Shown here one piece after another: positions 10,159 through 41,788 of a stretch of 41,788 nucleotides of DNA. Numbering within the stretch: the stretch's first letter is position 1; each line of letters starts with the position of its first letter. Position numbers and translations under genes: made by a program. Source of the stretch: Cyanophora paradoxa CCMP329. Taxonomy: Eukaryota; Plantae; Glaucophyta. The stretch is from positions 1 to 41,788 of the forward strand of contig QPMI01000363.1 of assembly GCA_004431415.1 (NCBI GenBank), written 5' to 3'. The notes beneath the pieces are model-generated. The model was not told where the DNA came from. It saw only the letters and a list, made by a program, of their open reading frames with translations, and made no database searches.

Positions 10159-10161
10159 AGA

Positions 10162-10797: not shown

Positions 10798-10866
10798 AGA
10801 CAGATGGGGCTTCGCTCCCCTCTACGTTCCCGCTTTCTAACTGGGCTTCGGGCGACCGAGAGTGAA

Positions 10867-18700: not shown

Positions 18701-21304
18701 ATCTTTCTTGTATTTTCTGGCGACTTGCTAGCGCCTTGTGCATATTCCCCCAGAGAGATTTGGGGTGCATCTTTCTTCTTTTTTGTCACAGATCAGAAAC
18801 CTGCTGCCTTCGACTGATTGACTTGCTGGTGGTTGAGTTCATCTTCCTAAGGCTAGTGCCTTGTGCATATTCCCCTGGAGAGATTTGGGAAGCATCCATC
18901 ATCTATTTCTTGACAGATCAGAAACCTGGGGCCTCCAACTGAGTGATTTGCCGGTGGATAGGCCATCTGCCTAAGGCTAGCGCCTTGTGCATTTTCCCCC
19001 GGAGAGATTTGGGAAGCATCCATCTTCTATTTCTTGACAGATCAGAAACCTGGGGCCTCCAACTGAGTGGCTTGCTGGTGGGTGGGTTCATCTTCCTAAG
19101 GCCAGCGCCTTGTGCATATTCCCCCAGAGAGATTTGGGGTGCATCTTTCTTCTATTTTATCACAGATCAGAAACCTGCGGCCTTCGACTGAGTGATTTGC
19201 CAGTGGGTAGTCCATCTGCCGAAGGCTAGCGCCTCTGTGCATATTCCTCCAGAGAGATTTGGGGTGCATCCTTCTATTTTGTGGCAGATCAGAAACCTCG
19301 GGCCTTCGACTGAGTGACTTGCTGGTGGGTGGGTTCATCTTCCTAAGGCCAGCGCCTTGTGCATATTGCGCCAGAGAGGTTTGGGGTGCATCTTTCTTCT
19401 TTTTGTCACAGATCAGAAACCTGCGGTCTTCGACTGAGTGATTTGCCAGTGGGTAGGCCATCTGCCTAAGGCTAGCGCCTTGTGCATTTTCCCCCAGAGA
19501 GATTTGGGGTGCATCTTTCTTGTATTTTCTGGCGACTTGCTCGCTCCTTGTGCATATTCCCCCAGAGAGATTTGGTGTGCATCTTTCTTCTGTTTTGTCA
19601 CAGATCAGAAAGCTGCGGCCTTCGACTGATTGACTTGCTGGTGGTTGGGTTCATCTTCCTAAGGCTAGCGCCTTGTGCATATTCCCCCGGAGAGATTTGG
19701 GAAGCATCCATCTTCTTTTTTTTGACAGATCAGAAACCTGGGGCCTCCAACTGAGTGATTTGCCCGCGGATAGGCAATCTGCCTAAGGCTAGCGCCTTGT
19801 GCATTTTCCCCTAGAGAGATTTTGGGTGCATCCTTCTTCTATTTTGTGGCAGATCAGAAACCTCGGGCCTTTGACTGAGTGGCTTGCTGGTGGGTGGGTT
19901 CATCTTCCTAAGGCCAGCGCCTTGTGTATATTCCCCGAGAGAGATTTGGGGTGCATCTTTCTTCTATTGTATCACAGATCAGAAAACTGGGGCCTTCGAC
20001 TGAGTGATTTGCCAGTGGGTAGGCCATCTGCCTAAGGCAAGCGCCTTGTGCATATTCCCCCAGAGAGATTTGGGGTGCATCTTTCTTGTATTTTCTGGCG
20101 ACTTGCTAGCGCCTTGTGCATATTCCCCCAGAGAGATGAGGGGTGCTTCTTTCTTCTATCTTGTCACAGATCAGACACCTGCCGCCTTCGACTTAGTGAT
20201 TTGCCGGTAGTAAGGCCAGCTGCCTAAGTCTAGCGCCTTGTGCATATTCCCCCAGAGAGATTTGGGATGCATCCATCTTCTATTTAGTGGCAGATCGGAA
20301 ACATGGGGCCTTTGACTGAGTGATTTGCTGGTATACTCTTCTTCTTTTTGCTGGTGGCTGTGTTCATCTTCCTAAGGCTAGTGCCTTGTGCATATTCCCC
20401 CAGACAGATTTGGGGTGCATCTTTCTTGTATTTTCTGGCGACTTGCTAGAGCCTTGTTCATATTCCCCCAGAGAAATTTGGGGTGCATTTGTCTTCAATT
20501 TTGTGGTGGATCGGAAACCTGCAGCCTTCCACTATTGCCTTGCTGGTGGGTGGGTTCAACTTCCTAAGGCTAGCGCCTTGTGCATATTCCCCCAGAGAGA
20601 TTTGGGAAGCATCCATCTTCTTTTTTTTGACAGATCAGAAACCTGGGACCTCCGACTGAGTGACTTGCTGTTGGGTGGGTTCATCTGCCTAAGGCTAGCG
20701 CCCTGTGCATATTCCCCCAGAGAGATTTGGGGTGCATCCTTCTTCTATTTTGTGGCAGATCAGAAACCTGGAGCCTTTGACTGAGTGACTTGCTGGTGGG
20801 TGGGTCATCTGCCTAAGGCTAGTGCCTTGTGTGCATATTTCCCCAGAGAGTGTTTGGGTGCATCTTTTTTCTATTTTCTGGCAGATTGGAAACCTGGGGC
20901 CTTCGACTTAGTGACTTGCTGGTGGGTGGGTCATCTGCGTAAGGCTAACGCCTTGTGCATATTCCCCCAGAGAGATTTGGGAAGCATCCATCTTCTTTTT
21001 TTTGACAGATCAGAAACCTGGGACCTCCGACTGAGTGACTTGCCGGTGGGTAGGCCATCTGCCTAAGCCTAGCGCCTTGTGCACATTCCCCCAGAGAGAT
21101 TTGGGGTGCATCTTTCTTCTTTTTTGTGGCAGATCAGAAACCTTGGGCCTTTGACTGAGTAGCTTGCTGGTGGGTGGGTTCATCTTCCTAAGGCCAGCGC
21201 CTTGTGCATATTCCCCCAGAGAGATTTAGGGTGCATCTTTCTTCTATTTTGTGGCAGATCGGAAACCCCTTAACTGAGTGACTTGCTGGTGGGTGGGTCA
21301 TCTG
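12724..21304 (+). repeat. Satellite B array, left domain (124-bp, 121-bp and ~76-bp deletion monomers; HORs)
   Basis: Unit GACTTGCTGGTGGGTGGGTCATCTGCCTAAGGCTAGCGCCTTGTGCATATTCCCCCAGAGAGATTTGG... with period 124 (13081 to 13205). Block duplications occur at offsets 374, 1358 and 4532. Divergence rises toward 18500-21300. Confidence 0.98.
20324..20355 (+). mobile_element. Extremely 5'-truncated (14 nt) copy of the LINE 3' end with 9-bp TSD
   Basis: TTTGCTGGT-[ATACTCTTCTTCTT]-TTTGCTGGT. The insert at 20333-20346 is identical to LINE 31424-31437. Confidence 0.8.
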
Positions 21305-22535
21305 TGGGGATATGCACAAGGCGCTAGCCTTTGGAAGATGAACCCACCCACCAGCAAACCACTCAGTCAAAGGCCCCAGGTTTCTGATCCGCAACAAAAT
21401 AGAAGAAGGATGCACCCCTCATCTCTCTGGGGGAAGATGCAAAAGGTGTTAGCGTTAGGCAGATGGCCTACCCATCAGCAAGTCACTCAGTTACAGGCTG
21501 GACGTTTGGGATCTGCCAAAAAGACAGATGCATCCCAAATCTCTCTAGGGGAATATGCACAAGGCGCTAGCCTTAGGCAGATGACCCTCCCAAAAGCAAG
21601 TCACTCAATTACAGGCTGGAGGTTTGGGATCTGCCACAAAAAAGACAGATGCATCCCAAATCTCTCTGGGGGAATATGCACAAGGCGCTAGCATTAGGCA
21701 GATGACCCACCCACCAGCAAGTCACTCAGTCCAAGGCCCCAGGTTTCCAATCTGCCAGAAAATAGAAGAAAGATGCACTTCAAATCTCTCTAGGGGAATA
21801 TGCAGAAGGCGCTAGCCTTAGGCAGATGACCCACCCACCAGCAAGTCACTCATTCGAAGGCCCTAGGTTTCCAATCTGCCAGAAAATAGAAGAAAGATGC
21901 GCCCCAAATATCTCTCGAGGAATATGCAAAAGGGGCTAGCCTTAGGCAGATGACCCACCCACCAGCAAGTCACTCAGTCCAAGGCCCCAGGTTTCCAATC
22001 TGCCAGAAAATAGAAGACAGATGCACTCCAAATCTCTCTGGGGGAATATGCACAAGGCGCTAGCCTTAGGCAGATGACCCACCCACCAGCAAGTCACTCA
22101 GTTACAGGCTGGAGGTTTGGGATCTGCCACAAAAAAGACAGATGCATCCCAAATCTCTCTAGGGGAATATGCACAAGGCGCTAGCCTTAGGCAGATGCCC
22201 CACCCACCAGCAAGTCACTCATTTGAAGGCCCTAGGTTTCCAATCTGCCAGAAAATAGAAGAAAGATGGGCCCCAAATATCTCTGGAGGAATATGCAAAA
22301 GGGGCTAGCCTTAGGCAGATGACCCACCCACCAGCAAGTCACTCAGTCGAAGGCCCCAGGTTTCCAATCTGCCAGAAAATAGAAGACAGATGAACTCCAA
22401 ATCTCTCTGGGCGAATATGCAAAAGGGGCTAGCCTTAGGCAGATGACCCACCCACCAGCAAGTCACTCAGTTACAGGCTGGAGGTTTGGGATCTGCCACA
22501 AAAAAGACAGATGCATCCCAAATCTCTCTGGGGAA
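21305..22535 (-). repeat. Satellite B, inverted block, left of LINE
   Basis: Orientation flips at ...GTCATCTG|TGGGGATATGCACAAGG. Reverse-complement 121/124 monomers follow. Confidence 0.97.
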
Positions 22536-22632
22536 CCCCCCCGGATCTGGCGAGGCACGCAGCAGCACAGCAGCAGCAGCGCGGAGCGTGGTGCGCACTT
22601 ATTCTTATCTTATGCGTCGTTCTGAGACTCTC

Positions 22633-22691
22633 CTGCCCTTGGGCACCTACAATCTGCCGCAAGGCACCTATTCCTGCCCTTCGGGCACCTA
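22633..22691 (+). promoter_or_regulatory. Three tandem mini-hairpins CTGCC-loop-GGCACCTA in the LINE 5'UTR
   Basis: TGCC-CTTG-GGCA, TGCC-GCAA-GGCA and TGCC-CTTCG-GGCA, each followed by CCTA, at a 20-21 nt period. Confidence 0.6.
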
Positions 22692-22732
22692 TCCGTACAG
22701 CCTCGCTTGATCTACGAGCCACTGCGCATCGC

Positions 22733-25303
22733 ATGACGCGTTTTCCGCTTGCGTCACCGCGCGCTCCTGACCGCTACTCTGCGCTGGCAGTTCTGACCGT
22801 TATGGCCGACGAAGACTGGTCTTCCTTGCAGCAAGGCGCATCGTCTGGCGGACGCAATAAGACTGAGCGAACTCATTTTATGTCGTTCTGGCACAAGCCC
22901 GATCGTTCTGCGAGGCGTCATTCTGTGTTTGCTGCTCCGGCCGCGGAGAGGCACCTTCTTGGTCAGGAGCTCAATCATGCCTCGGGAGTGCCGACTCAGC
23001 TTCGCTTCCGCTTCCCATTGGATCCTGCCAGGGCGCGAATCACTGAACCTGATGATGTGCGCAAGGTCCAAGGTTCCTATCGTTCAAAGGAGATGATTTC
23101 TCGTGCTCGGGAACTCTCACGGCACATTCAGCGCCCCGGCACTCCTGGCATCTCGCTTGACCCCAAACTGAACCCTGACAAGAACACTCTGGACGTCACT
23201 GTCGATTTTCACTCCCCAGACCATGGCGTCCTTCAATCCTACTCGGCTTTTTATGGCACCTTCGACAAACTTACAGAACTTTTCCCTACCATAGTCTCAG
23301 ACCTCTATCCCCGTGGACACCGCTATAAGCTGTTCCTCCACCATCAGACTGTGACTGATTTTGTTCGGGCCAATTCTGTTGCTGGTGTCCCTTCCTCGGT
23401 CCCAGCCCTTGCTTCTAGCTGGTCATCAAAGCCAGGAGAGCCTGAGCCCCACGTCCTTCTTGATCTGTCCATCAACCTTCCTCCCTTGGCGAAGCCCGAC
23501 CACCCATTCTTCTCAGCAGCCTCGATGGAATCTGATGAGTTCATCCGAACTGTCCTTGTCTCTATTCAGGATGCCTTGTCCCAGCCGAATGGTGTACTGG
23601 TCTCCAGTGACTCTCCCACAAACTTGCATCTTGACACCCTCCTTGACCGTATTCGGCTTCGTGAGACCAATCCTGACACTAGCCTTGGCGACCATGTTGT
23701 GATCCTTCCTTTCTCTGACCCGGCCCCAACTATTCTCTGTGCTGTGGCTGCTCACAAACTTGAGGGCTTCCGTCTTAAACACAAGGGTGTCGCGTATGAC
23801 CGACGTCTGCATCCGAACAATGACTACAACTTTACTGTGAAATGTGAGCCTGAGGTGGCGCCTTTCCCGGAAATTGTGCATGGTGGAGACTATCGCGTGG
23901 CAAACCGAGCTATCTGCCCGATCATGCTAATTGTGTCTGTCCCACGGTCGAACTTTTTAGTCCGCCATGTCCTCTCTCGTGACAAGGACTACCCTTTTGG
24001 CAATAATGGCATCAAATCTGTCATCTTTCCTGTTGAGGATTCCCTGCTGGCCTTCAATCTCAACTTCTTGGATGCTGACTACCCCTCTGTTTTGTACAAC
24101 ATCTCTCAAGCTCGGACTGGTGCCTCTGTGCCTGAGGCTGTTGCGGAGCCGTGCAATTACACTCCTTTCTACTCGTGCCGACCTGAATGTGAATTCCATG
24201 ATAAGTCGTTCTGTCTTATCCCGGCCAAGGATGATCAGTCTTTCTTTTATCATGTCAACCGTGATCCCGTCATCTATCACCTGCCAATGAGCCTGCGGAA
24301 TGAGATTCTTGCCTTCCACGGTGATGAATCTGCTCTTGCCTCGGCTCTCCCTCCGGTGCTCATACTCATGCTCTCTCTATTTCGGCCTCTCTCTTTCGTA
24401 ACCTCTTTTCCTTATGTTGTACTCTTGCAGAATGACCCTCGTGATCGTATGCCAGCTGCCCGACCTGCAGCAGCTCCTGCTTCATCAGCCTTACCGCGGC
24501 CTGCCCTGTCTGCTTCTGCTGCCCAGACCAAAGGAGCCCCTCCTCGCCCTCCTGCTCCTGTGCCGTCCGTGTCTGCTGTGCAGCCAGCTCCAGCTCCGGC
24601 TCCTGCCCCATCTGCTGGCTCGCCTCCGGATCCCATGCTGCTTGCAGTTGTTAAAGCCTTTGACCCCGCTCAACTTGCTGTTCTGGCTGCCACCAACCCT
24701 CCTATTGCACACTTCTTGATGACCTACGGTCACCTGGTTTCCGCGTACTCTTCTTCTTCTTCCGCTGCCCCGGTGTCATCTGGTCCTGCTGCCCCCTTGT
24801 CTGCCGCTTCGCCTGCTGGCTCGCGTGACGTCCCCAAGCGCACTCGTGACTCCGACCTCGAGCCCACTGCCTCTGAGTTGCCTGATGCTCCTCCCTCTCT
24901 GGCACCCCCGCAAAAGACGCAAGTGACAGCTGCAAACTCCATGCTTCCGCGCCCTTTGCAAGTCCCTGCAACCTCTCCTGCTCGGTCTGTCCTCTCTTGT
25001 GCTTTTGCTCTCCCCCCCCTGACTTTACCTACTGCTCTCTCAGTAAAAGTGGTCAGATTAAACCTGCGAAGCCCTCTGGTTCGGCAGCTGAGACCCAAAG
25101 TGATTCCATTGAAATTCGCAGCTACTATGCAGCCCTTGTCAACCAGCCACAGAAGTAGCCTTTTAACTGCACATGATCTTATTTTGAATTTTCCCCTGGC
25201 TTCCAATTGCAATGTACCTCCCTTGCCTCGTTGCCCACTGCTTGCTGAGCCGAGCCCCACAGACCAGATCCGTCCCTTGCGTGCACCCCCGTGGCCTGAT
25301 TAA
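22733..25303 (+). CDS. LINE ORF1 protein (~830-860 aa), no recognisable canonical domain, Pro/Ala/Ser-rich C-terminal third
   Basis: Long intact ORF ending 2 nt before the ORF2 ATG. The first element-internal ATGs are at 22733 and 22802. The track's 22511 ATG lies in the flanking satellite. Confidence 0.85.
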   Translation: MTRFPLASPRAPDRYSALAVLTVMADEDWSSLQQGASSGGRNKTERTHFMSFWHKPDRSARRHSVFAAPAAERHLLGQELNHASGVPTQLRFRFPLDPARARITEPDDVRKVQGSYRSKEMISRARELSRHIQRPGTPGISLDPKLNPDKNTLDVTVDFHSPDHGVLQSYSAFYGTFDKLTELFPTIVSDLYPRGHRYKLFLHHQTVTDFVRANSVAGVPSSVPALASSWSSKPGEPEPHVLLDLSINLPPLAKPDHPFFSAASMESDEFIRTVLVSIQDALSQPNGVLVSSDSPTNLHLDTLLDRIRLRETNPDTSLGDHVVILPFSDPAPTILCAVAAHKLEGFRLKHKGVAYDRRLHPNNDYNFTVKCEPEVAPFPEIVHGGDYRVANRAICPIMLIVSVPRSNFLVRHVLSRDKDYPFGNNGIKSVIFPVEDSLLAFNLNFLDADYPSVLYNISQARTGASVPEAVAEPCNYTPFYSCRPECEFHDKSFCLIPAKDDQSFFYHVNRDPVIYHLPMSLRNEILAFHGDESALASALPPVLILMLSLFRPLSFVTSFPYVVLLQNDPRDRMPAARPAAAPASSALPRPALSASAAQTKGAPPRPPAPVPSVSAVQPAPAPAPAPSAGSPPDPMLLAVVKAFDPAQLAVLAATNPPIAHFLMTYGHLVSAYSSSSSAAPVSSGPAAPLSAASPAGSRDVPKRTRDSDLEPTASELPDAPPSLAPPQKTQVTAANSMLPRPLQVPATSPARSVLSCAFALPPLTLPTALSVKVVRLNLRSPLVRQLRPKVIPLKFAATMQPLSTSHRSSLLTAHDLILNFPLASNCNVPPLPRCPLLAEPSPTDQIRPLRAPPWPD

Positions 25304-25305
25304 AT

Positions 25306-28300
25306 ATGGTTAACATTGCATCAACAAATGTGGGCGGGCTCAATAGTCCCAGCAAGCTGCAGAACTTTGTGGAACGTTGCAGGAAGTTTGCCGTTGCTCA
25401 CAAGATAGACATTCTCTGCTTACAGGAAACTAAGTTACGGGAATTTGATGACGCTGGTCACCCTTTGGGAAAACTTGCAAAGATTGCCGCTGCCTGGCGA
25501 GGCCTGTTCTTCCACTCTGCTCCTACTCAATCCCGCTCCACTGGTGTTGCCATAATGGTCACGCCCTTCTTTGCTGCACAGCACGAGGTTACACTTGCTC
25601 GTCAGGACTCTGATGGACATTTTATTTCGGTCTCTGTTGCGTACAAGGCGTCGGGTTCCTTCCCTGCTACGACTGTACTCTTGGCTTGCGTCTATGCTCC
25701 TGCTAGTGATAACCGGGACCGCCGTGAATGGTGGCAATCTTGTGTGCAGGCTGGGTATCTCTCCACCACTTTGCCTATGCTTCTTATCGGAGACTGGAAT
25801 CACCGCACCCCAAAATCTAATTCCCTGCAGCGCTCGTACCTTCACACAACGATGACTTCCCACCAGCTTGATGATCTTGCGAACCATGCTCCGCCGCCTC
25901 CTGCCGGCGGGACTGCTTCAGCTTTTGCCCCAACTTATTCGCGTATTGTTAGCCTTAAAGCTGTAAACTCGCGCCTCGACTTTGCTCTTGCAACCCAGTG
26001 GTTCCAGCGTCGCCTTGCCACGTACTCGCTCCTAGCGCCATCTGATCCACTCCACCTCCAGCTCGATCATCGTATTCTTGTTCTCTCTTTTTCGGGCCCT
26101 CGTGTGCACCGTCACTTGCCCCGGTCCCGCGTGCAAGTGTTCCCGTACGATTTCGTCAGCAATCTGCCGGGACAGTATTCTCAGCGCGGCAATCCAGTCT
26201 GCCTCGACCCTGCTCTGCGCAAACGCACGGAAACGCACTTGACCCAATTCCTGAGCACTATCCTTCAAGCGCGCGATGAAGGCGAGGTAGTTACGGATGC
26301 TGCTGCCTTTGATGACACATGGTGCTCGTTCTCCAAGCGGCTCTGCAAGATGGCGCGTAAGCACAGAGCACATGTGATTAGCAAGCTTTACATGCATGAG
26401 CGCGGGGCGTTCAAAGCGCTGGGCGACGTCGAGATGAAGATCTACCGCCTGCCGCACGGATGAGCACTATCATTCAAGCACGTGGTGAAGGCGAGGTAGT
26501 TACGGATGCTGCTGTCTTCGACGATACTTGGCGCGTATTCTGTTAGCGGCTCTGCAAGATGGCACGTAAGCACAGAGCGCACGTGATTAGCAAGCTTTAC
26601 ACGAATGAGAGCGCGGCGTACAAAGCGCTGGGCGACGTTGAAATGAAGATCTACCGCTTGCCACCCGGCTCCGATGCTGTCGCGCTGTACCGCGAGCGCA
26701 CCCAGCGGCTTGAATCCCTGCGCGAACTTCAGAAGAAGGTCTCTCTCAGCAATCGCCAGCTTGCCAGGCTTCAGCACCGGCTTACATTCGAAAGCGGCTC
26801 TAAGCGTGACTGGGCGCGGCTCGCCAAGCCCTCCTCCATTGTCCCCCCGCCGCTGCACTTCACCTCGGATGGTCCCACTGTTATCACTGTTGAGCCTGGC
26901 GCGGTTGCAAACTATTTGGCTAGAAAGCTTGTAGAACTGGGCGCTCCTACCCCTGCTTTCCTGTTGACTCGGACCTCTATCCTCGACGCTCTCTGCCCCC
27001 CTCCTGAACCCCCCGAGGACCCTACTCGGGGGGATAATCCCCCTTCCCGAGGACCCTATCCCCCTTCCGGCGTCTCCGGATAATCCCTCCGCTGCTGCTT
27101 TCATTCAACAATTTGTGGACGATATCTTGCCCCATGTTCAGGGGACTGTCCCGCCTGTTTGGCACACTCAGACTAATATCTCTCCTGACGACGTAGCGTT
27201 CTCTATCAGTAAAGCGTATGCCCATGGGGCACCAGGTCCTGATGGAATTCCTGTTGGCATTTTTAAGATGCACACAAAGCCCTGGTCTGTTTTCCTGGCT
27301 GCCTACTTTCAAAAGATCGCCGTTCAAGGCTTCCTTCCTGACTTTATGCGCGACTTGACCTACACTTTCATCTGGAAGCGGTCAGGCTTGCCCACTGATG
27401 CTTCGAAATACCGACCTATTGGAGTTTCTAACACACTCTTGCGCTTGTTCGAACGGACTATGGTCACAGTAGCCAATCCGATCTTACAACTCATCATTCC
27501 TGAAGATCAGTTCGGTTTCGTGCAAGGTCGGGACGTTCATAAAAATATCTTTGCAGTGCTGGCAACGTATACACGCATCCGCTACGCCAATTATGACTGT
27601 GTTATCAGGTTTGACTCTGATCTGAAGTCTGCGTACGATCTCTTGCTTTGGGTTATTATGGCGCTTGTTCTCCATGTTCAACAGTGGCCCTGGCTTATCC
27701 GGCGAATGCACCACTGCCTGTACAACTCCAGAGCCCCCCTCCGTGCACGTGTATTTGCGAATGGGCTATTCTCTTCTGTGTTCTCACGTCTTGTGGGCAC
27801 CATTCAAGGTGGTCCCTGGAGCCCGGTTTCCTTCATTCTCTCGATCAGCCCTCTACGTTCTCTCTTGCTCTCACTCACTGATATACCCCGCCCTGTTGGC
27901 ACCCCCCTTGTCCAGTTTGCTGATGATATTTATCAGCTATTCCTGCTCCGCGCCCAGGGGCTATCTCTGCATGACTCCCTCTTAGCAATCCATGCACATT
28001 TCGGCTCTTTTAAACCTTTCTCTGGTCAGCATCTCTCTATGGAGAAATCTCTTGCTATTGTTCTGAGGGAACCTGCTGCCTCTCCATTGGATCTCGATCC
28101 GGCCGATCCCTTGCCATTCCCTGTTCTCCGCGTCGCTGAGCTTGATCCTGCTTGTCATAAGCAGCTCGGTTTCCCTCATCAGCTCCTTCTGGATCGCGAG
28201 CACCATCCGTCTTGGAACATGATTCGACATAAAGCAACCTTCTTTATGGAGACAGCTGTCGATTTCCAGTCGTCCCTTCTTGGACGTGGTCGCATCGCCT

Positions 28301-31170
28301 ATGCTTTTTGTCAGGGGGTCTTAAGCTTTTACATCCGTGCGGTTCCAGCACCTCCTAAGATCCTCCGGGCTATTTCAAAGAATTTACAGACCTTTGTCTG
28401 GAAACGTTCTTCAAATTCCGATGCGTTCATCTTACCCCATCAGGGCATGACCACTGCTTTGTGTCGACCTGTATCTCTCGGCGGTCTCGGAGCGCCCTCC
28501 CCCGAACACTTCCAGCTCGCCTTTGCCGCAAACTCTTTGGAATCGTGGCTTGCTTCCCCGGCATCTTTTCCTGGTCGAGAAATTATTGAGGCGTTCACGG
28601 AAAACGGTGGCTTTGGGCTCTGGCTTCCTTTTCTCAACAGGACTGATTGCTTGGTTAAGCCTTTGTGGCCTCCACCTGCTGACCCATTCTTTGCCATCTT
28701 CGACGCTTGGCGGACTATTTTCGATGTCAAGAAACCACGCTGCGCTTGGGATTTCCTGCGTATGCCGATCATGCACCCTTGGTATAAGAAAGACACATAC
28801 TATGAGCGTGATTTCACTTTCACGTTGCTCTTCCGTCTCGGCTTCCGTTTCAACTATCAAATCTGGGACTTCTCTGGGGAACATACTCTCTATGTCGAGC
28901 CCTCCTATCCCGAGCAACTGCGCGACCAGCTGCATGCGCTCAATAATCGACTTGCACAAGAGGTCTGGCGCTGTGGTTGCACTGCAGACTGGAAACACGA
29001 ACCTGGAGGTCTCGCTATTGGCCCTTTTTCGAAACTTGCTGCTGAACGCGTCTCACTTCAGGGCGTAGCTCTCTGTCGCGTTCGCCTTCTTCCTGACACA
29101 CAGCTCGCTTTCCATGAGATTGATGTGCCCTGCAGTACTTTGCTTGACAGTCCCGTTGCCCTCCCCGATGTACTTGCAATCCGGCCCGCGGCCCGTGCGA
29201 TCGACTTCATTCCCGTGCCTGCACATGCGCTTAGCCTTGTTAAGAATGCTTGCAAGTTGTCCCCCATGCCTGCACTCGTCCGGTTCCTCATGAACTCGTT
29301 ACAGCTTTCCGACCTTGCACTCCGTCCGCTGCCTCCGTCGTCTTCCCGTACGTTTGCGTTCCACTCTGACCGTGAGAACATCAATGATCGCTCAAAGGAA
29401 GAGCTGCGCCTCTCTAAGTCGGTTGCGTACAAGCTGCCTGCTGCCCCGTCGCGTTTCACGGTTCACAACATGTACAAGTACCTTTCCTCCCACGCTTTCA
29501 TGGCGCCGACGACCGCTGAGACTAAGTGGCGTGCTGATCTCTCCCCAAAGTTCCTCTGGCCGCCGGGCTACGATGCGCGCACTGATCGCTTTCCCTGGTT
29601 CAACACGGTGATTCCCGACCTCCGCTATGCTCTCACGCAGCGCGTCCTTGACGGCTACTTTGCACTGCGCTACAACGCTCTTCGCACATCGTCCCGCATC
29701 GCTGATATGGCTGCGCGCTCTGATCTTCAGCGTCCTGCTTCGGCAAATTTGCTTGACAGTGAGCTCCTCTCCTCGCTATGTCCGGTCTGCCACCGGCGCT
29801 GCAATGCGCTGCACGTTTTCGTTCTCTGCCCTGTTGTGCAGCAATTTTGGTCGCTCATCTTCCATGCCCTGCAGCTCCAACCGATGCCCATTCCTTCCGC
29901 TCGCTTTGTTGCCTGGTTGCTTACTGGCTCGGTCCGTTTTGCTGACAGCTGGATGTTCTTGCAGAACTGGGAGTGGCAGGTTGTTCGGATTCTTGGATTG
30001 CACGTCATTTTCCGCTCGTATTGTCTGGCCTATCGAGCAGGTCGCACTGAAGCTGCGGCCACGTTTGCAATGGACCCTAACACACAGCTGCCCCTTACAC
30101 CTTCCTCCAAGACGGGCTTGAAGGCCGCTACTCTGATGACTGCCTTGTTCCGCGAACTGGACGATTTCATGGACATGCTTCCTCGCCGTTTACCTCGATT
30201 TAAAGTCACCTATGTCCGTGGGTATATCCGTTTCATCTCTACTGCTGACCCCTCTCATTCTTCATTCTACGCTAATCTTTTAGACGCTGCTCGTACTTAT
30301 GACCATTCCCTAGCCTCTTATGAGCACTGTGAACATATTGCTCAGCCTGCCCCTAGCCCCGATCTAGCCCCTAGCCCCCTTGTGGCTCAGTTTCCTTATG
30401 CCAGTGCGCGGCCTGTCCTGCTGCAGCGTCTTGAAAAGGAGGATCTTGAAGGCTATATGTACCCTCCTGACAACGGCTCAGACTCCTCTGACCTTTCCGA
30501 CCTTGGCCCTGATGATCCTGATAATTCCTCCAGTAGTACCTCACCGGATGATGACGACCCCCCTGGTGGACCCGACCCTGCCCCTGACCCTGGTCCTGTG
30601 GCTCACTCACCCCCTCACCCGCTGCCACCTCACCCGCCGCCCGATATTGACTCGGAGGATGAGCCGCCTCTTCAACGCCGTCTTGTTGGTGCTTCAGCGT
30701 TTGGTCTTGATGCTGCTATAGATGATACAGGTTCACCTCCGCCCTCTCCTCAAGTTATCATCTATGTGGATGACACTGAGCTTGCCCCTGATCTGCTGCC
30801 GATCTCTCCTATCCGAATCGACGCTGTTGCTGTTGAGCCCGACTTCACGAGTCATGCTGCCATTGCTTCCCCAGCTCCTCCCTCTTCTGCCCCTCTGCCG
30901 TCTTCTGCGCCTATGACGCCCATGGATACTGATCCTCTTTCTCCTTTTATTGTCCCGCCTAAGCGTCGTCGAGTGTCTTCTCCAGACCCTGGTGCTCTGG
31001 ATCATGGTGATTACATTCCTGGTGTCCCACCTCAGGTTTCTTTCAAACGCTTGCGGCCTTCACCTCCCCCAACTCTCCCATCCGCTGCCCCTATGGATCT
31101 CGCTGATGACCCAGGTTCCCCAATGGTGCTTATCTCTGACGAAGAGGCTGATGACATGACTGATGGCTGA
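25306..31170 (+). pseudogene. LINE ORF2 (APE endonuclease - reverse transcriptase - CCHC - acidic/Pro-rich tail), interrupted by two lesions; reconstructs to ~1873 aa
   Basis: APE motifs: STNVGGL, LQETK, GVAI, VYAP, IGDWN, SRLD, LDH. RT motifs: APGPDG, YRPI, QFGFVQGR, DLKSAYD, GTIQGGPWSP, FADD, GGLG. Zinc finger CPVC-x7-H-x4-C at ~29779-29829. Removing a 209-bp duplication and a 34-bp insertion joins 25306-26463, 26559-27083 and 27115-31170 into one frame. Confidence 0.95.
26252..26669 (+). repeat. 209-bp diverged tandem duplication within ORF2
   Basis: Copies start with TGAGCACTATC at 26252 and 26461. There are about 30 differences by manual count (~86% identity). The duplication creates TGA at 26461 and a frameshift. 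Confidence 0.95.
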
Positions 31171-31439
31171 AGGTTTCACACGTGAGGTCGTGACCAGGAC
31201 TCCCCCAGGCCAGCATTAGGAAGAGGCCCGCATTGGGATGTCTGTGGTTGTTTTCCGTGTCTGCGTGTATGAGCGCCGGACCGCCAGGGCATACATGGCA
31301 GACCGTAAGGCGTTTGCGCCGCCACTACCCTTGTCTGGTTGGTTCACTGTCGATTGTGCTTCGGGCCTTCGGGTCCTTCGCCTTTCGTCAAAACCGCACA
31401 ACCGGCTTGGGCATGTCTTATACATACTCTTCTTCTTCT
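31171..31439 (+). other. LINE 3'UTR with stem-loops and (TTC)n tail
   Basis: Stem GTCTGCGTGTATG (31259-31271) pairs with CATACATGGCAGAC (31290-31303). A GGGCC-TTCG-GGTCC hairpin sits inside a TTGTGC/GCACAA stem. The tail is CTCTTCTTCTTCTT with no poly(A). Confidence 0.75.
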
Positions 31440-32595
31440 TCTGGGGAAATATGCACAAGGCGCTAGCCTTAGGCAGATGACCCACCCACCAGCAAGTCAC
31501 TCATTCAAAGGCCCTAGGTTTCCAATCTGCCAGAAAATAGAAGAAAGATGCACCCCGAATCTCCCTGGGGGAATATGCACAAGGCGCTAGCCTTAGGCAG
31601 ATGAAACCACCCACCAGCAAGTCACTCCGTCGAAGGCCCCAGGTTTCCAATCTGCCAGAAAATAGAAAACAGATGCACTCCAAATCTCTCTGGGGGAATA
31701 TGCACAAGGCGCTAGCCTTAGGCAGATGACCCACCCACCAGCAAGTCACTCAGTCGAAGGCCACAGGTTTCCGATCCGCCAGAAAATAAAAGAAAGATGC
31801 ACCCCAAATCTCTATGGGGAAATATGCACAAGGCGCTAGCCTTAGGCAGATGACCCACCCACCACCAAGTCACTCAGTCGAAGGCCCCAGGTTTCCGATC
31901 TGCCACAAAAAAGAAGAAGGATGCACCCCAAATCTCTCTGGGGGAATATGCACAAGGAGCTAGCCGTAGGCAGATGACCCACCCACCAGTAAGTCACTGA
32001 GTCAAAGGCCCCAGGTTTCCAATCTGCCAGAAAATAGAAGAAAGATGCACCCAAAAACTCTCTGGGGAAATATGCACAAGGCGCTAGCCTTAGGCAGATG
32101 ACCCACCCACCAGCAAGTCACTCAGTCGAAGGCCACAGGTTTCCGATCCGCCAGAAAATAAAAGAAAGATGCACCCCAAATCTCTATGGGGAAATATGCA
32201 CAAGGCGCTAGCCTTAGGCAGATGACCCACCCACCACCAAGTCACTCAGTCGAAGGCCCCAGGTTTCCGATCTGCCACAAAAAAGAAGAAGGATGCACCC
32301 CAAATCTCTCTGGGGAAATATGCACAAGGAGCTAGCCGTAGGCAGATGACCCACCCACCAGTAAGTCACTGAGTCAAAGGCCCCAGGTTTCCAATCTGCC
32401 AGAAAATAGAAGAAAGATGCACCCAAAAACTCTCTGGGGAAATATGCACAAGGCGCTAGCCTTAGGCAGATGACCCACCCACCAGCAAGTCACTCAGTCA
32501 AAGGCCCCAGGTTTCCAATCTGCCAGAAATAGAAAAAGGATGCACTTCAAATCTCTCTGGGGGAATATGCACAAGGCGCTAGCCTTAGGCAGATG
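31440..32595 (-). repeat. Satellite B, inverted block, right of LINE (124-type only; 372-bp trimer duplication)
   Basis: Reverse-complement monomers. Identical ORF-track peptides occur at 31842 and 32214 (offset 372). Confidence 0.97.
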
Positions 32596-32631
32596 GGTGG
32601 GTGCAGATAGCCTAAGGGAATATGCACAAGG

Positions 32632-35600
32632 GACTTGCTGGTGGGTGGGTCATCTGCCTAAGGCTAGCGCCTTGTGCATATTCCCCTAGAGAGATTTGGG
32701 ATGCATCTGTGTTCTATTTTCTGGCAGATTGGAACCCTGGGGCCTTCGAACGAGTGACTTGCTGGTGGGTGGATCATCTGCCTAAGGCTAGCGCCTTGTG
32801 CATATTCCCCTAGAGAGATTTGGGATGCATCTGTCTTTTTTGTGGCAGATCCCAAACCTCCAGCCTGTAACTGAGTGACTTGCTGGTGGGTGGGTCATCT
32901 GCCTAAGGCTAGCCCCTTTTGCATATTCCTCCAGAGATATTTGGGGCCCATCTTTCTTCTATTTTCTGGCAGATTGGAAACCTAGGGCCTTCAAATGAGT
33001 GACTTGCTGGTGGGTGGGGCATCTGCCTAAGGCTAGCGCCTTGTGCATATTCCCCTAGAGAGATTTGGGATGCATCTGTCTTTTTTGTGGCAGATCCCAA
33101 ACCTCCAGCCTGTAACTGAGTGACTTGCTGGTGGGTGGGTCATCTGCCTAAGGCTAGCGCCTTGTGCATATTCCCCCAGAGAGATTTGGAGTGCATCTGT
33201 CTTCTATTTTCTGGCAGATTGGAAACCTGGGGCCTTGGACTGAGTGACTTGCTGGTGGGTGGGTCATCTCCCTAAGGCTAGCGCCTTGTGCATATTCCTC
33301 CAGAGAGATTTGGGATGCATCTGTCTTTTTTGTGGCAGATCCCAAACCTCCAGCCTGTAACGGAGTGACTTGCTCGTGGGTGGGTCATCTGCCTAAGGCT
33401 AGCGCCTTGTGCATATTTTCCTAGAGAGATTTGGAATGCATCTGTGTTCTATTTTCTGGCAGATTGGCCTTCGAACGAGTGACTTGCTGGTGGGTGGATC
33501 ATCTCCCTAAGGCTAGCGCCTTGTGCATATTCCCCTAGAGAGATTTGGGATGCATCTGTCTTTTTTGTGGCAGATCCCAAACCTCCAGCCTGAACTGAGT
33601 GACTTGCTGGTGGGTGGGTCATCTGCCTAAGGCTAGCGCCTTGTGCATATTCCCCCAGAGAGATTTGGAGTGCATCTGTCTTCTATTTTCTGGCAGATTG
33701 GAAACCTGGGGCCTTGGACTGAGTGACTTGCTGGTGGGTGGGTCATCTGCCTAAGGCTAGCGCCTTGTGCATATTCCCCTAGAGAGATTTGGGATGCATC
33801 TGTCTTTTTTGTGGCAGATCCCAAACCTCCAGCCTGTAATTGAGTGACTTGCTGGTGGGTGGGTCATCTGCCTAAGGCTAGCGCCTTGTGCATATTCCCC
33901 TAGAGAGATTTTGGATGCATCTGTCTTTTTGTGGCAGATCCCAAACCTCCAGCCTGTAACTGAGTGACTTGCTGGTGGGTGGGTCATCTGCCTAAGGCTA
34001 GCGCCTTGTGCATATTCCCCAGAGATATTTGGGTCGCATCTTCTTCTATTTTCTGGCAGATTGGAAACCTAGGGCCTTCGAATGAGTGACTTGCTGGTGG
34101 GTGGGTCATCTGCCTAAGGCTAGCGCCTTGTGCATATTCCCCTAGAGAGATTTGGGATGCATCTGTCTTTTTTGTGGCAGATCCCAAACCTCCAGCCTGT
34201 ATCGGAGTGACTTGCTGGTGGGTGGGTCATCTCCCTAAGGCTAGCGCCTTGTGCATATTCCCCTAGAGAGATTTGGGATGCATCTGTGTTCTATTTTCTG
34301 GCAGATTGGAACACTGGGGCCTTCGAACGAGTGACTTGCTGGTGGGTGGATCATCTCCCTAAGGCTAGCGCCTTGTGCATATTCCCCTAGAGAGATTTGG
34401 GATGCATCTGTCTTTTTTGTGGCAGATCCCAAACCTCCAGCCTGTAACTGAGTGACTTGCTGGTGGGTGGGTCATCTGCCTAAGGCTAGCCCCTTTTGCA
34501 TATTCCCCTAGAGAGATTTGGAGTGCATCTGTGTTCTATTTTCTGGCAGATTGGAAACCTAGGGCCTTCAAATGAGTGACTTGCTGGTGGGTGGGTCATC
34601 TCCCTAAGGCTAGCGCCTTGTGCATATTCCCCTAGAGAGATTTGGGATGCATCTGTCTTTTTTGTGGCAGATCCCAAACCTCCAGCCTGGAACTGAGTGA
34701 CTTGCTGGTGGGTGGGTCATCTGCCTAAGGCTAGCCCCTTTTGCATATTCCTCCAGAGAGATTTGGAGTGCATCTGTCTTCTATTTTCTGGCAGATTGGA
34801 AACCTAGGGCCTTCAAATGAGTGACTTGCTGGTGGGTGGGCATCTGCCTAAGGCTAGCGCCTTGTGCATATTCCCCTAGAGAGATTTGGGATGCATCTGT
34901 CTTTTTGTGGCAGATCCCAAACCTCCAGCCTGTAACTGAGTGACTTGCTGGTGGGTGGGTCATCTGCCTAAGGCTAGCGCCTTGTGCATATTCCCCAGAG
35001 AGATTTGGAGTGCATCTGTCTTCTATTTTCTGGCAGATTGGAAACCTGGGGCCTTGGACTGAGTGACTTGCTGGTGGGTGGGTCATCTGCCTAAGGCTAG
35101 CGCCTTGTGCATATTCCCCTAGAGAGATTTGGGATGCATCTGTCTTTTTTGTGGCAGATCCCAAACCTCCAGCCTGTAACTGAGTGACTTGCTGGTGGGT
35201 GGGTCATCTGCCTAAGGCTAGCGCCTTGTGCATATTCCTCCAGAGATATTTGGGGCGCATCTTGCTTCTATTTTCTGGCAGATTGGAAACCTAGGGCCTT
35301 CGAATGAGTGACTTGCTGGTGGGTGGGTCATCTGCCTAAGGCTAGCGCCTTGTGCATATTCCCCTAGAGAGATTTGGGATGCATCTGTCTTTTTTGTGGC
35401 AGATCCCAAACCTCCAGCCTGTATGAGTGACTTGCTGGTGGGTGGGTCATCTCCCTAAGGCTAGCGCCTTGTGCATATTCCCCTAGAGAGATTTGGGATG
35501 CATCTGTCTTTTTTGTGGCAGATCCCAAACCTCCAGCCTGTATCGGAGTGACTTGCTGGTGGGTGGGTCATCTGCCTAAGGCTAGCGCCTTGTGCATATT

Positions 35601-38600
35601 CCCCTAGTGAGATTTGGATGCATCTGTCTTTTTTGTGGCAGATCCCAAACCTCCAGCCTGTAACGGAGTGACTTGCTGGTGGGTGGGTCATCTGCCTAAG
35701 GCTAGCGCCTTGTGCATATTCCCCCAGAGAGATTTGGAGTGCATCTGTCTTCTATTTTCTGGCAGATTGGAAACCTGGGCCTTCAATGAGTGACTTGCTG
35801 GTGGGTGGGTCATCTCCTAAGGCTAGCGCCTTGTGCATATTCCCCTAGAGAGATTTGGATGCATCTGTCTTTTTTGTGGCAGATCCCAAACCTCAGCCTG
35901 TAACTGAGTGACTTGCTGGTGGGTGGGTCATCTGCCTAAGGCTAGCGCCTTGTGCATATTCCCCAGAGAGATTTGGATGCATCTGTCTTCTATTTTCTGG
36001 CAGATTGGAAACCTGGGCCTTGACTGAGTGACTTGCTGGTGGGTGGGTCATCTCCTAAGGCTAGCGCCTTGTGCATATTCCCCAGAGAGATTTGGGATGC
36101 ATCTGTCTTTTTTGTGGCAGATCCAAACCTCCAGCCTGTAACTGAGTGACTTGCTGGTGGGTGGGTCATCTGCCTAAGGCTAGCGCCTTGTGCATATTCC
36201 CCTAGAGAGATTTGGGATGCATCTGTGTTCTATTTTCTGGCAGATTGGAACCCTGGGGCCTTCGAACGAGTGACTTGCTGGTGGGTGGATCATCTGCCTA
36301 AGGCTAGCGCCTTGTGCATTCCCTAGAGAGATTTGGATGCATCTGTCTTTTTTGTGGCAGATCCAAACCTCCAGCCTGTAACTGAGTGACTTGCTGGTGG
36401 GTGGGTCATCTGCCTAAGGCTAGCCCTTTGCATATTCCTCCAGAGATATTTGGGGCGCATCTTCTTCTATTTTCTGGCAGATTGGAAACCTAGGGCCTTC
36501 AATGAGTGACTTGCTGGTGGGTGGGTCATCTGCCTAAGGCTAGCGCCTTGTGCATATTCCCCTAGAGAGATTTGGGATGCATCTGTCCTTTTTGTGGCAG
36601 ATCCCAAACCTCCAGCCTGTAACTGAGTGACTTGCTGGTGGGTGGGTCATCTGCCTAAGGCTAGCGCCTTGTGCATATTCCCCAGAGAGTTTTGGGTGCA
36701 TCTGTCTTCTATTTTCTGGCAGATTGGAAACCTGGGGCCTTCGACTTAGTGACTTGCTGGTGGGTGGGTCATCTGCCTAAGGCTAGCGCCTTGTGCATAT
36801 TCCCCTAGAGAGATTTGGATGCATCTGTCTTTTTGTGGCAGATCCCAAACCTCCAGCCTGTAATGAGTGACTTGCTGGTGGGTGGGTCATCTGCCTAAGG
36901 CTAGCGCCTTGTGCATATTCCCCTAGAGAGATTTGGGATGCATCTGTCTTTTTTGTGGCAGATCCCAAACCTCCAGCCTGTAACTGAGTGACTTGCTGGT
37001 GGGTGGGTCATCTGCCTAAGGCTAGCCCCTTTTGCATATTCCTCCAGAGATATTTGGGGCCCATCTTTCTTCTATTTTCTGGCAGATTGGAAACCTAGGG
37101 CCTTCAAATGAGTGACTTGCTGGTGGGTGGGTCATCTGCCTAAGGCTAGCGCCTTGTGCATATTCCCCTAGAGAGATTTGGGATGCATCTGTCTTTTTTG
37201 TGGCAGATCCCAAACCTCCAGCCTGTAACTGAGTGACTTGCTGGTGGGTGGGTCATCTGCCTAAGGCTAGCGCCTTGTGCATATTCCCCAGAGAGATTTG
37301 GGTGCATCTGTCTTCTATTTTCTGGCAGATTGGAAACCTGGGCCTTGACTGAGTGACTTGCTGGTGGGTGGGTCATCTCCTAAGGCTAGCGCCTTGTGCA
37401 TATTCCCCTAGAGAGATTTGGGATGCATCTGTCTTTTTGTGGCAGATCCCAAACCTCCAGCCTGTAACTGAGTGACTTGCTGGTGGGTGGGTCATCTGCC
37501 TAAGGCTAGCGCCTTGTGCATATTCCCCAGAGAGATTTGGGTGCATCTGTTCTATTTTCTGGCAGATTGAACCTGGGCCTTGACGAGTGACTTGCTGGTG
37601 GGTGGTCATCTGCCTAAGGCTAGCGCCTTGTGCATATCCCCTAGAGAGATTTGGATGCATCTGTCTTTTTGTGGCAGATCCAAACCTCCAGCCTGTAACT
37701 GAGTGACTTGCTGGTGGGTGGGTCATCTGCCTAAGGCTAGCCCCTTTTGCATATTCCTCCAGAGATATTTGGGGCCCATCGTTCTTCTATTTTCTGGCAG
37801 ATTTGAAACCTAGGGCCTTCAAATGAGTGACTTGCTGGTGGGTGGGTCATCTGCCTAAGGCTAGCGCCTTGTGCATATTCCCCTAGAGAGATTTGGGATG
37901 CATCTGTCTTTTTTGTGGCAGATCCCAAACCTCCAGCCTGTAACTGAGTGACTTGCTGGTGGGTGGGTCATCTGCCTAAGGCTAGCGCCTTGTGCATATT
38001 CCCCTAGAGAGATTTGGGATGCATCTGTCTTCTATTTTCTGGCAGATTGGAAACCTGGGGCCTTGACTGAGTGACTTGCTGGTGGGTGGGTCATCTGCCT
38101 AAGGCTAGCGCCTTGTGCATATTCCCCTAGAGAGATTTGGGATGCATCTGTCTTTTTGTGGCAGATCCCAAACCTCCAGCCTGTAACTGAGTGACTTGCT
38201 GGTGGGTGGGTCATCTGCCTAAGGCTAGCGCCTTGTGCATATTTCCCAGAGATTTGGGGCATCTTCTTCTATTTTCTGGCAGATGGAACCTGGCCTTATG
38301 AGTGACTTGCTGGTGGGTGGGTCATCTGCCTAAGGCTAGCGCCTTGTGCATATTCCCCTAGAGAGATTTGGGATGCATCTGTCTTTTTTGTGGCAGATCC
38401 CAAACCTCCAGCCTGTAACTGAGTGACTTGCTGGTGGGTGGGTCATCTGCCTAAGGCTAGCGCCTTGTGCATATTCCCCAGAGAGATTTGGGGTGCATCT
38501 GTCTTCTATTTTCTGGCAGATTGGAAACCTGGGGCCTTCGACTGAGTGACTTGCTGGTGGGTGGGTCATCTGCCTAAGGCTAGCGCCTTGTGCATATTCC

Positions 38601-41600
38601 CCTAGAGAGATTTGGGATGCATCTGTCTTTTTTGTGGCAGATCCCAAACCTCCAGCCTGTAATTGAGTGACTTGCTGGTGGGTGGGTCATCTGCCTAAGG
38701 CTAGCGCCTTGTGCATATTCCCCTAGAGAGATTTTGGATGCATCTGTCCTTTTTGTGGCAGATCCCAAACCTCCAGCCTGTAACTGAGTGACTTGCTGGT
38801 GGGTGGGTCATCTGCCTAAGGCTAGCGCCTTGTGCATTTTTCCTCAGAGAGTTTTTGGGTGCATTCTTCTTCTATTTTCTGGCAGATTGGAAACCTGGGG
38901 CCTTCAAATGAGTGACTTGCTGGTGGGTGGGTCATCTGCCTAAGGCTAGCGCCTTGTGCATATTCCCCTAGAGAGATTTGGGATGCATCTGTCTTTTTTG
39001 TGGCAGATCCAAACCTCCAGCCTGTAACTGAGTGACTTGCTGGTGGGTGGGTCATCTGCCTAAGGCTAGCGCCTTGTGCATATTCCCCCAGAGAGATTTG
39101 GGGTGCATCTGTCTTCTATTTTCTGGCAGATTGGAAACCTGGGGCCTTGGACTGAGTGACTTGCTGGTGGGTGGGTCATCTGCCTAAGGCTAGCGCCTTG
39201 TGCATATTCCCCTAGAGAGATTTGGATGCATCTGTCTTTTTTGTGGCAGATCCCAAACCTCCAGCCTGTAACTGAGTGACTTGCTGGTGGGTGGGTCATC
39301 TGCCTAAGGCTAGCGCCTTGTGCATATTCCCCTAGAGAGATTTTGGATGCATCTGTCTTTTTTGTGGCAGATCCCAAACCTCCAGCCTGTAACTGAGTGA
39401 CTTGCTGGTGGGTGGGTCATCTGCCTAAGGCTAGCGCCTTGTGCATTTTCCTCAGAGAGTTTTTGGGTGCATTCTTCTTCTATTTTCTGGCAGATTGGAA
39501 ACCTGGGGCCTTCGAATTAGTGACTTGCTGGTGGGTGGGTCATCTTCCTAAGGCTAGCGCCTTGTGCATATTCCCCTAGAGAGATTTGGATGCATCTGTC
39601 TTTTTTGTGGCAGATCCCAAACCTCCAGCCTGTAACTGAGTGACTTGCTGGTGGGTGGGTCATCTGCCTAAGGCTAGCGCCTTGTGCATATTCCCCTAGA
39701 GAGATTTGGGATGCATCTGTCTTTTTTGTGGCAGATCCCAAACCTCCAGCCTGTAACTGAGTGACTTGCTGGTGGGTGGGTCATCTGCCTAAGGCTAGCG
39801 CCTTGTGCATATTCCCCTAGAGAGATTTGGGATGCATCTGTCTTTTTTGTGGCAGATCCCAAACCTCCAGCCTGTAACTGAGTGACTTGCTGGTGGGTGG
39901 GTCATCTGCCTAAGGCTAGCGCCTTGTGCATATTCCCCTAGAGAGATTTTGGATGCATCTGTCTTTTTTGTGGCAGATCCCAAACCTCCAGCCTGTAACT
40001 GAGTGACTTGCTGGTGGGTGGGTCATCTGCCTAAGGCTAGCGCCTTGTGCATATTCCCCAGAGAGATTTGGGGTGCATCTTCTTCTATTTTCTGGCAGAT
40101 TGGAAACCTGGGGCCTTCGACTTAGTGACTTGCTGGTGGGTGGGTCATCTTCCTAAGGCTAGCGCCTTGTGCATATTCCCCTAGAGAGATTTGGGATGCA
40201 TCTGTCTTTTTTGTGGCAGATCCCAAACCTCCAGCCTGTAACTGAGTGACTTGCTGGTGGGTGGGTCATCTGCCTAAGGCTAGCGCCTTGTGCATATTCC
40301 CCTAGAGAGATTTGGGATGCATCTGTCTTTTTTGTGGCAGATCCCAAACCTCCAGCCTGTAACTGAGTGACTTGCTGGTGGGTGGGTCATCTGCCTAAGG
40401 CTAGCGCCTTGTGCATATTCCCCAGAGAGATTTGGGGTGCATCTGTCTTCTATTTTCTGGCAGATTGGAAACCTGGGGCCTTCGACTGAGTGACTTGCTG
40501 GTGGGTGGGTCATCTGCCTAAGGCTAGCGCCTTGTGCATATTCCCCTAGAGAGATTTTGGATGCATCTGTCTTTTTTGTGGCAGATCCCAAACCTCCAGC
40601 CTGTAACTGAGTGACTTGCTGGTGGGTGGGTCATCTGCCTAAGGCTAGCGCCTTGTGCATATTCCCCTAGAGAGATTTGGAGTGCATCTGTCTTTTTTGT
40701 GGCAGATCCCAAACCTCCAGCCTGTAACTGAGTGACTTGCTGGTGGGTGGGTCATCTGCCTAAGGCTAGCGCCTTGTGCATATTTCCCCAGAGAGTTTTT
40801 GGGTGCATTCTTCTTCTATTTTCTGGCAGATTGGAAACCTGGGGCCTTCGACTGAGTGACTTGCTGGTGGGTGGGTCATCTGCCTAAGGCTAGCGCCTTG
40901 TGCATATTCCCCTAGAGAGATTTGGGATGCATCTGTCTTTTTTGTGGCAGATCCCAAACCTCCAGCCTGTAACTGAGTGACTTGCTGGTGGGTGGGTCAT
41001 CTGCCTAAGGCTAGCGCCTTGTGCATATTCCCCTAGAGAGATTTGGGATGCATCTGTCTTTTTTGTGGCAGATCCCAAACCTCCAGCCTGTAACTGAGTG
41101 ACTTGCTGGTGGGTGGGTCATCTGCCTAAGGCTAGCGCCTTGTGCATATTCCCCAGAGAGATTTGGAGTGCATCTGTCTTCTATTTTCTGGCAGATCGGA
41201 AACCTGGGGCCTTCAACTGAGTGACTTGCTGGTGGGTGGGTCATCTGCCTAAGGCTAGCACCTTGTGCATATTCCCGTAGAGAGATTTTGGATGCATCTG
41301 TCCTTTTTGTGGCAGATCCCAAACCTCCAGCCTGTAACTGAGTGACTTGCTGGTGGGTGGGTCATCTGCCTAAGGCTAGCGCCTTGTGCATATTCCCCTA
41401 GAGAGATTTGGAGTGCATCTGTCTTTTTTGTGGCAGATCCCAAACCTCCAGCCTGTAACTGAGTGACTTGCTGGTGGGTGGGTCATCTGCCTAAGGCTAG
41501 CGCCTTGTGCATATTTCCCCAGAGAGTTTTTGGGTGCATCTGTCTTCTATTTTCTGGCAGATTGGAAACCTGGGGCCTTGGACTGAGTGACTTGCTGGTG

Positions 41601-41788
41601 GGTGGGTCATCTCCCTAAGGCTAGCGCCTTGTGCATATTCCTCCAGAGAGATTTGGGATGCATCTGTCTTTTTGTGGCAGATCCCAAACCTCCAGCCTGT
41701 AACGGAGTGACTTGCTGGTGGGTGGGTCATCTGCCTAAGGCTAGCGCCTTGTGCATATTCCCCTAGAGAGATTTGGATGCATCTGTCT
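32632..41788 (+). repeat. Satellite B array, right homogeneous domain (121- and 124-bp monomers, 245-bp dimers and 366-bp trimers)
   Basis: Periods are 245 (32664/32909/33154) and 121 (39674/39795). The array runs off the window end. Confidence 0.98.

Follow-up and report, generated by a model that had tools for sequence, protein, structure and literature searches.

A disordered C-terminal extension of ORF2 with candidate nuclear-import and SUMO-docking motifs in an L1-like retrotransposon of Cyanophora paradoxa

Among retrotransposons with long terminal repeats (LTR elements), targeting is explained by the end of the integrase, which bears short motifs or a chromodomain. The targeting domain of the Ty5 integrase, for example, is a short motif which binds Sir4. 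We know of no mechanism by which a non-LTR retrotransposon is targeted at the level of a genomic region. In green algae, the L1 elements Zepp and ZeppL cluster in centromeric repeat regions, and the mechanism of their targeting is undescribed (PMC8226300). The present study deals with an L1-like non-LTR retrotransposon, a long interspersed nuclear element (LINE), from the glaucophyte Cyanophora paradoxa CCMP329. It lies in satellite DNA on contig QPMI01000363.1 of assembly GCA_004431415.1, of which positions 1 to 41,788 of the forward strand were analysed (the window, 41,788 nucleotides). Its second open reading frame (ORF2) ends in a long acidic tail rich in proline, aspartate and serine. A preliminary description of this DNA had proposed that the tail, through paired SUMO-interacting motifs (SIMs), HP1-ligand-like motifs and a nuclear localisation signal (NLS), could tether the ribonucleoprotein particle (RNP) to satellite chromatin. 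We tentatively favour a more modest reading, in which the tail is a real, disordered and lineage-specific extension of ORF2 that would give nuclear import and probably weak SUMO docking.

Comparison with ORF2 of the L1/Tx1 LINEs shows the same order of apurinic-type endonuclease (APE), reverse transcriptase (RT) and CX2CX7HX4C zinc finger, and the same two-ORF layout. A target-site duplication is likewise present, as is the helical segment after the finger, which can be aligned with theirs. Unlike L1/Tx1 elements, the element described here has about 280 extra disordered residues past the usual end of ORF2, an ORF1 without a recognisable domain, and a (TTC)n end in place of poly(A). A poly(A) 3' tail is a feature of L1-like elements, and CTC(TTC)4 is found here instead; simple-repeat 3' tails occur in other LINE clades, so the missing poly(A) is not decisive. 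We class the element as an L1-like (L1/Tx1) LINE, judged by the order of APE, RT with its FADD box and CCHC finger and not by an RT tree. The best ORF2 matches were environmental APE-RT proteins and plant L1-like proteins, with RTE- and CR1-like proteins at similar scores. Zepp and ZeppL are also algal L1-type LINEs, but they belong to another algal lineage and homology with them is seen over the RT only. With the Ty5 targeting domain the tail would have in common a short linear motif at the disordered C-terminus of the integrating enzyme, a proposed heterochromatin partner and a possible control by phosphorylation. Ty5, on the other hand, belongs to the LTR elements and has an integrase. The Sir4 to which it binds is yeast-specific, and both binding and targeting by Ty5 have been shown by experiment, whereas the element described here is known from sequence alone.

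The tail is a genuine coding sequence that evolved with the rest of the element. Its frame is free of internal stops, whereas the other two forward frames have 3 and 28. The three codon positions are strongly unlike one another, with T at 0.49 and A at 0.10 in position 3, and the synonymous choice for each amino acid is the same as in core ORF2 and in ORF1 (NNT codons preferred, NNA avoided). At the stop codon (31168-31170) the composition jumps, and the 3' untranslated region (UTR) that follows has neither the codon periodicity nor the C-richness of the tail. A recent read-through into the UTR is argued against by this codon usage, by the periodicity and by the switch in composition at the stop. 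The preliminary description had placed the tail at 30440-31170, and the 243 amino acids from 30440 were used for composition. They contain 22% Pro, 15% Asp and 12% Ser (49% together), no Trp and no Cys, and their net charge is -35 against a net-basic core. An AlphaFold2 model made with no alignment, and used only for the lack of secondary structure in the tail, predicted no helix or strand past ORF residue 1073. Disorder thus sets in at about residue 1074 (nucleotide 30334), so that the Pro/Asp/Ser-rich extension, judged from composition, model and codon usage, occupies 30334-31167 on the forward strand and is nearer 280 than 240 residues long. It had also been stated that the acidic tail follows the finger. 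The tail stood up as real and coding, but about 170 predicted helical residues intervene between the two and the disorder starts earlier than had been thought.

In a word search with the whole ORF the best homologues had 22-29% identity, over the RT only. The relatives that carry the finger (P0001, P0002, P0005, P0008 and P0009) stop 93-183 residues past it and have no acidic tail, whereas ORF2 here runs 462 residues past the finger. In P0001, P0002 and P0005, which have the same finger position and pattern and extend 145-183 residues beyond it, these last 145-183 residues align with the post-finger helical segment of the present ORF. The claim that the tail lies beyond the usual end of an L1 ORF2 is therefore borne out by the nearest detectable relatives, which are 25-29% identical. 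An exhaustive phmmer search with the last 506 residues of the ORF gave no match among 1.84 billion representative proteins. Exact-protein look-up found neither the RT ORF nor the APE ORF on record, a metagenome scan for six peptide patterns had 25 matches, none of them to a relative, and a feature search of the ESM Atlas with the tail gave no usable match. As far as public data go, the tail is a lineage-specific addition.

Re-reading of the sequence gave exactly the motif positions reported before for the two blocks and the two basic clusters. The first of these clusters, PPKRRRV (30955-30975, forward strand, as are all features of the tail), fits the classical monopartite NLS pattern K-[K/R]-x-[K/R] in an exposed region. 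Nine of the 10 K/R residues of the tail fall in three clusters, QRR, KRRR and KRLR, and KRRR is the sole run of three or more K/R across the 1351-residue ORF. A run of four K/R occurred in only 0.036% of composition-preserving shuffles of the tail (P about 4e-4). These counts mark PKRRRV, whose likeness to an SV40-type NLS had been noticed, as a non-random cluster of basic residues, and the protein has no other cluster of the classical NLS type. KRLR belongs to a second basic cluster, FKRLRP (31042-31059).

The two blocks flank these clusters. Block 1 (30721-30780) has the sequence DDTGSPPPSPQVIIYVDDTE, in which DDTGSP...PQVIIYV is followed by DDTE; its IIYV forms a loose SIM-like core, and it also matches PxVxI. 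Block 2 (31105-31155), DDPGSPMVLISDEEADD, reads DDPGSPMVLI and then SDEEADD and also contains a PxVxI match. The strict SIM and HP1-ligand patterns used here are those of the ELM resource. By these patterns block 2 (SPMVLISDEE), which lies four residues short of the C-terminus, matches a SIM of the strict parallel type, its flank being made up of Ser and acidic residues. A core with V, I or L at three of four positions, an acidic/Ser flank and a predicted unstructured region are the features of a SIM, and block 2 has all three, which makes it a candidate. Its V-L-I core followed by Ser-Asp-Glu-Glu at the extreme C-terminus is arranged as in validated SIMs under phospho-regulation, among them the C-terminal SIM of Daxx and those of PIAS. 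The SIMs of Daxx, PIAS and PML likewise consist of a V/I/L core, then Ser and a run of Asp/Glu, and both the Daxx motif and block 2 stand at the very C-terminus. Daxx, PIAS and PML are, however, host nuclear proteins with measured binding to SUMO, whereas here there is a pattern match, with a Tyr in the core of block 1. In the whole ORF, SIM-like cores flanked by at least three acidic residues are found only in blocks 1 and 2, and the same is true of PxVx[LIVM] matches. A SIM-like core, an acidic flank and PxVxI coincided twice in 0.02% of shuffles (post-hoc P about 2e-4).

A weaker third block, DTDPLSPFIV (30925-30954), stands directly 5' of the basic cluster PPKRRRV. It falls in the best self-alignment of the tail, where it is paired with the region of block 2, and this pairing is not significant. 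An HP1 chromoshadow ligand of the form P-[hydrophobic]-V-x-[L/M] was considered for both blocks and rejected. Both read P-x-V-x-I and so resemble the PxVxL ligands of HP1, but both end in Ile where the ligand has Leu or Met, and in block 1 position 2 is taken by Gln. PQVII and PMVLI thus both fail the strict pattern and fit only the relaxed PxVx[LIVM] form, and of the HP1 ligands first described only this relaxed form is retained. The twin SIMs fared in a similar way, since only block 2 fits the strict pattern.

From these features a model of the tail as an appendage for nuclear import and docking can be drawn. Entry of the ORF2 protein (ORF2p) or the RNP into the nucleus would be driven by the KRRR cluster. 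Once there, the protein may dock weakly through its C-terminal motif on SUMO-modified nuclear or chromatin proteins, and this docking would probably be strengthened by phosphorylation of the Ser beside the core. Block 1, 125 residues upstream of the block 2 motif, is a looser match of the same kind. The long acidic Pro/Ser stretch could give flexible spacing and perhaps also present a charge patch directed at nucleic acid or histones. That such docking should bias integration to satellite chromatin is conjecture and lies outside what we hold likely.

Several observations weigh against this favoured model. The tail is known from one copy only, in which a full ORF2p cannot be made, the reading frame being broken by the duplication at a junction, by an in-frame TAG and by a frameshift. 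The motif tests were framed after the motifs had been seen. Block 1 fails the strict SIM pattern owing to its Tyr and fits only a loose h-h-x-h, and the strict pattern itself is unspecific, with four further matches in folded regions of the ORF. The mean pLDDT (predicted local distance difference test score) of the AlphaFold2 model is 41, and the term 'disordered' leans partly on composition. An internal repeat in the tail was rejected, as the Smith-Waterman score of the tail against itself was 110, under the shuffle mean of 116 +/- 16. The two blocks had been regarded as related to each other; both are present where they were reported, but the relation is left unsupported by this self-alignment. 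The likeness of the blocks does not stem from a recent DNA duplication, since they have seven identical residues and encode four of these by different codons. In addition, nothing beyond tiny repeats was reported in the tail DNA by Tandem Repeats Finder (TRF).

Alternatively, the tail could be a generic disordered appendage, real and coding and perhaps with a working NLS, whose SIM-like and PxVxI-like blocks arose by chance as hydrophobic islands and have neither SUMO nor HP1 for a partner. This explanation is quite possible and comes close to the favoured one in likelihood. The tail would then serve, if it has a role, in solubility, in balancing charge against the basic RT core, or in autoinhibition by mimicry of nucleic acid. 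A self-alignment not above shuffles and the four strict SIM matches elsewhere in the ORF are in keeping with it, and so is a charge of -35 beside a net-basic core. Taken singly, the motifs are not rare: at least two loose SIM-like matches occurred in 3.9% of shuffles and at least two PxVx[LIVM] matches in 6.9%. Among the 1.84 billion representatives there is also no tail-bearing relative in which conservation of the blocks could be seen. What a chance origin accounts for poorly is the double coincidence of core, acidic flank and PxVxI at the 0.02% level, and the position of block 2 at the extreme C-terminus with its Ser-Asp-Glu-Glu, as in phospho-regulated SIMs.

A further-reaching proposal makes the tail a targeting module, which would hold the RNP at satellite heterochromatin rich in SUMO or HP1 and so direct integration there. 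By analogy with the Ty5 targeting domain or the chromodomains of chromoviruses this is conceivable, though we regard it as unlikely. The SIM-like and PxVxI-like blocks and the NLS-like cluster on which it draws are present. The setting also agrees with it, as the LINE is inserted in a 124-bp satellite and is a full-length copy with an intact target-site duplication, and an independent 14-nucleotide fragment is inserted in the same satellite. This second insertion (20333-20346, forward strand) consists of the last 14 nucleotides of the 3' end of the element, flanked by a duplication of TTGCTGG, and it lies at another monomer position and in another relative orientation. For the 14-nucleotide end there are three matches, two of them exact and one with a single mismatch, where 0.03 would be expected. 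The 124-bp array has thus received at least two insertions, with no sequence-specific site, and the choice would be regional and not specific for a sequence. Clustering of algal L1 elements at centromeres, by a mechanism not described, is known (PMC8226300). However, satellites make up about three quarters of the window and insertions last longer in gene-poor satellite regardless of how they arrived there, because of which two satellite insertions say nothing on preference and the location is without weight. Both blocks fail the strict HP1 ligand pattern. Our search of the literature yielded nothing on HP1 in Cyanophora, and it yielded no report of a SIM in the tail of a LINE ORF2. If the favoured reading is true, a SUMO-binding, NLS-bearing LINE tail would be a candidate mechanism for region-level targeting of non-LTR elements. 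If, which is doubtful, the SIMs of ORF2 do dock on SUMO-rich satellite or heterochromatin, this would be motif-based chromatin targeting in a non-LTR element. For the present this is a hypothesis only, well defined but drawn from a single damaged copy.

That damage raises the question whether the tail could be an artefact of this copy, in which an ancestral stop was lost or a frameshift occurred in a dead element and translation now reads into the former 3' UTR or into foreign sequence. The copy is visibly damaged upstream, it is the only one seen, and its relatives stop about 300 residues earlier. TRF and blastn revealed, at 26252-26669 on the forward strand, one ORF2 segment present twice head to tail as 209-bp copies that are 86% identical. 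The pair shifts the frame, copy 2 has an in-frame TAG, and a second frameshift lies between about 26940 and 27083. The differences between the two copies number 7, 8 and 15 at the three codon positions, with a nonsynonymous divergence (dN) of 0.087, a synonymous divergence (dS) of 0.48 and a ratio of 0.18. Since the differences are mostly at third codon positions and dS is 0.48, the pair did not arise by fresh duplication. What is seen resembles a junction between two family lineages which diverged under purifying selection, and could have come from template switching, recombination or a join made in assembly. Two such diverged copies imply that other, diverged members of the family exist or existed, and the dN/dS of 0.18 between them suggests that the LINE family is, or was, under selection. 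With regard to the tail, a further 243 codons without a stop would have a chance of about 0.1%, by our own estimate from local base composition. Codon-position bias is strong in these codons, they share the synonymous usage of ORF1 and core ORF2, and the true 3' UTR past 31170 has a different, non-periodic composition. Stop-codon loss, which had been named as a possible origin of the tail, is for these reasons improbable, slightly more so even than heterochromatin tethering.

Least probable of all is a role of the SIMs in counter-defence, in which ORF2p would dock on SUMO-modified silencing factors and so evade or exploit SUMO-dependent repression. What speaks for it is wholly indirect: block 2 fits the SIM pattern, and Cyanophora places repressive 5-methylcytosine on young transposable elements, so active silencing exists (PMC12344493).

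The element as a whole occupies 22536-31441 on the forward strand as a single copy with ORF1, APE, RT, CCHC finger, tail and 3' UTR, a delimitation based on Pfam matches, on the satellite present on both flanks and on reading of the junctions. Further fragments of it elsewhere in the window were not found by blastn. By direct reading, TGGGGAA (7 bp) is duplicated at the target site, on the left at 22527-22535 and on the right at 31440-31448; the duplication is up to 9 bp long (TCTGGGGAA) if the TC that it has in common with the TTC tail is counted. ORF1 (22511-25303, forward strand) has 930 codons as listed and is rich in Pro and Ala near its C-terminus. Its listed ATG is within the satellite, and in the element itself ATG first occurs at 22733. 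No Pfam family was matched by ORF1. At its residues ~310-320 (23440-23480) there is a PxVxL/SIM-like stretch, EPEPHVLLDLS, with an acidic flank weaker than in the tail blocks. The ATG of ORF2 stands 2 nucleotides past the ORF1 stop (25301-25308), a spacing compatible with termination-reinitiation. Part 1 of ORF2 (25306-26463, forward strand) is the apurinic-type endonuclease (PF03372, E 1.5e-12) and is truncated by the 209-bp junction. Part 2 (27115-31170, forward strand; 1351 codons) contains the RT, a long middle region, the CCHC finger, the helical segment and the tail. The RT (PF00078, E 1.7e-11) covers residues 96-311, with the FADD catalytic box at 268-271. C-terminal to it, the CX2CX7HX4C zinc finger of L1/Tx1 type occupies residues 889-905 (29779-29832, forward strand). 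The segment after the finger (residues 906-1073; 29833-30333, forward strand) is predicted to be helical from the AlphaFold2 model, at low confidence, and aligns with the C-terminal residues of relatives. The 3' UTR, read directly, extends over 31171-31441 on the forward strand and ends in CTC(TTC)4 (31427-31441). The 14-nucleotide micro-insertion has the same (TTC)n-type end as the LINE.

The satellites around the element are of two kinds. A 147-bp satellite fills 1-7124 and a 124-bp satellite fills 12724-22535 and 31440-41788. The 124-bp satellite which flanks the LINE directly (21301-22535 and 31440-32595) is opposite in orientation to the large arrays (12724-21304 and 32632-41788), and the LINE therefore sits within an inverted satellite block of roughly 2.4 kb. 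The 147-bp satellite (1-7124 and 9339-10158) is GC-rich (60%) and has a higher-order period of 293 bp; short blocks of it recur around 8900-10160 in both orientations. Between 7200 and 12700 there are fragments which resemble an LTR-retrotransposon pol remnant (ORF at 8320-9078), interleaved with satellite pieces in both orientations. An intact ORF of 447 codons and of unknown kind is present at 10804-12147, between the 147-bp and the 124-bp satellites.

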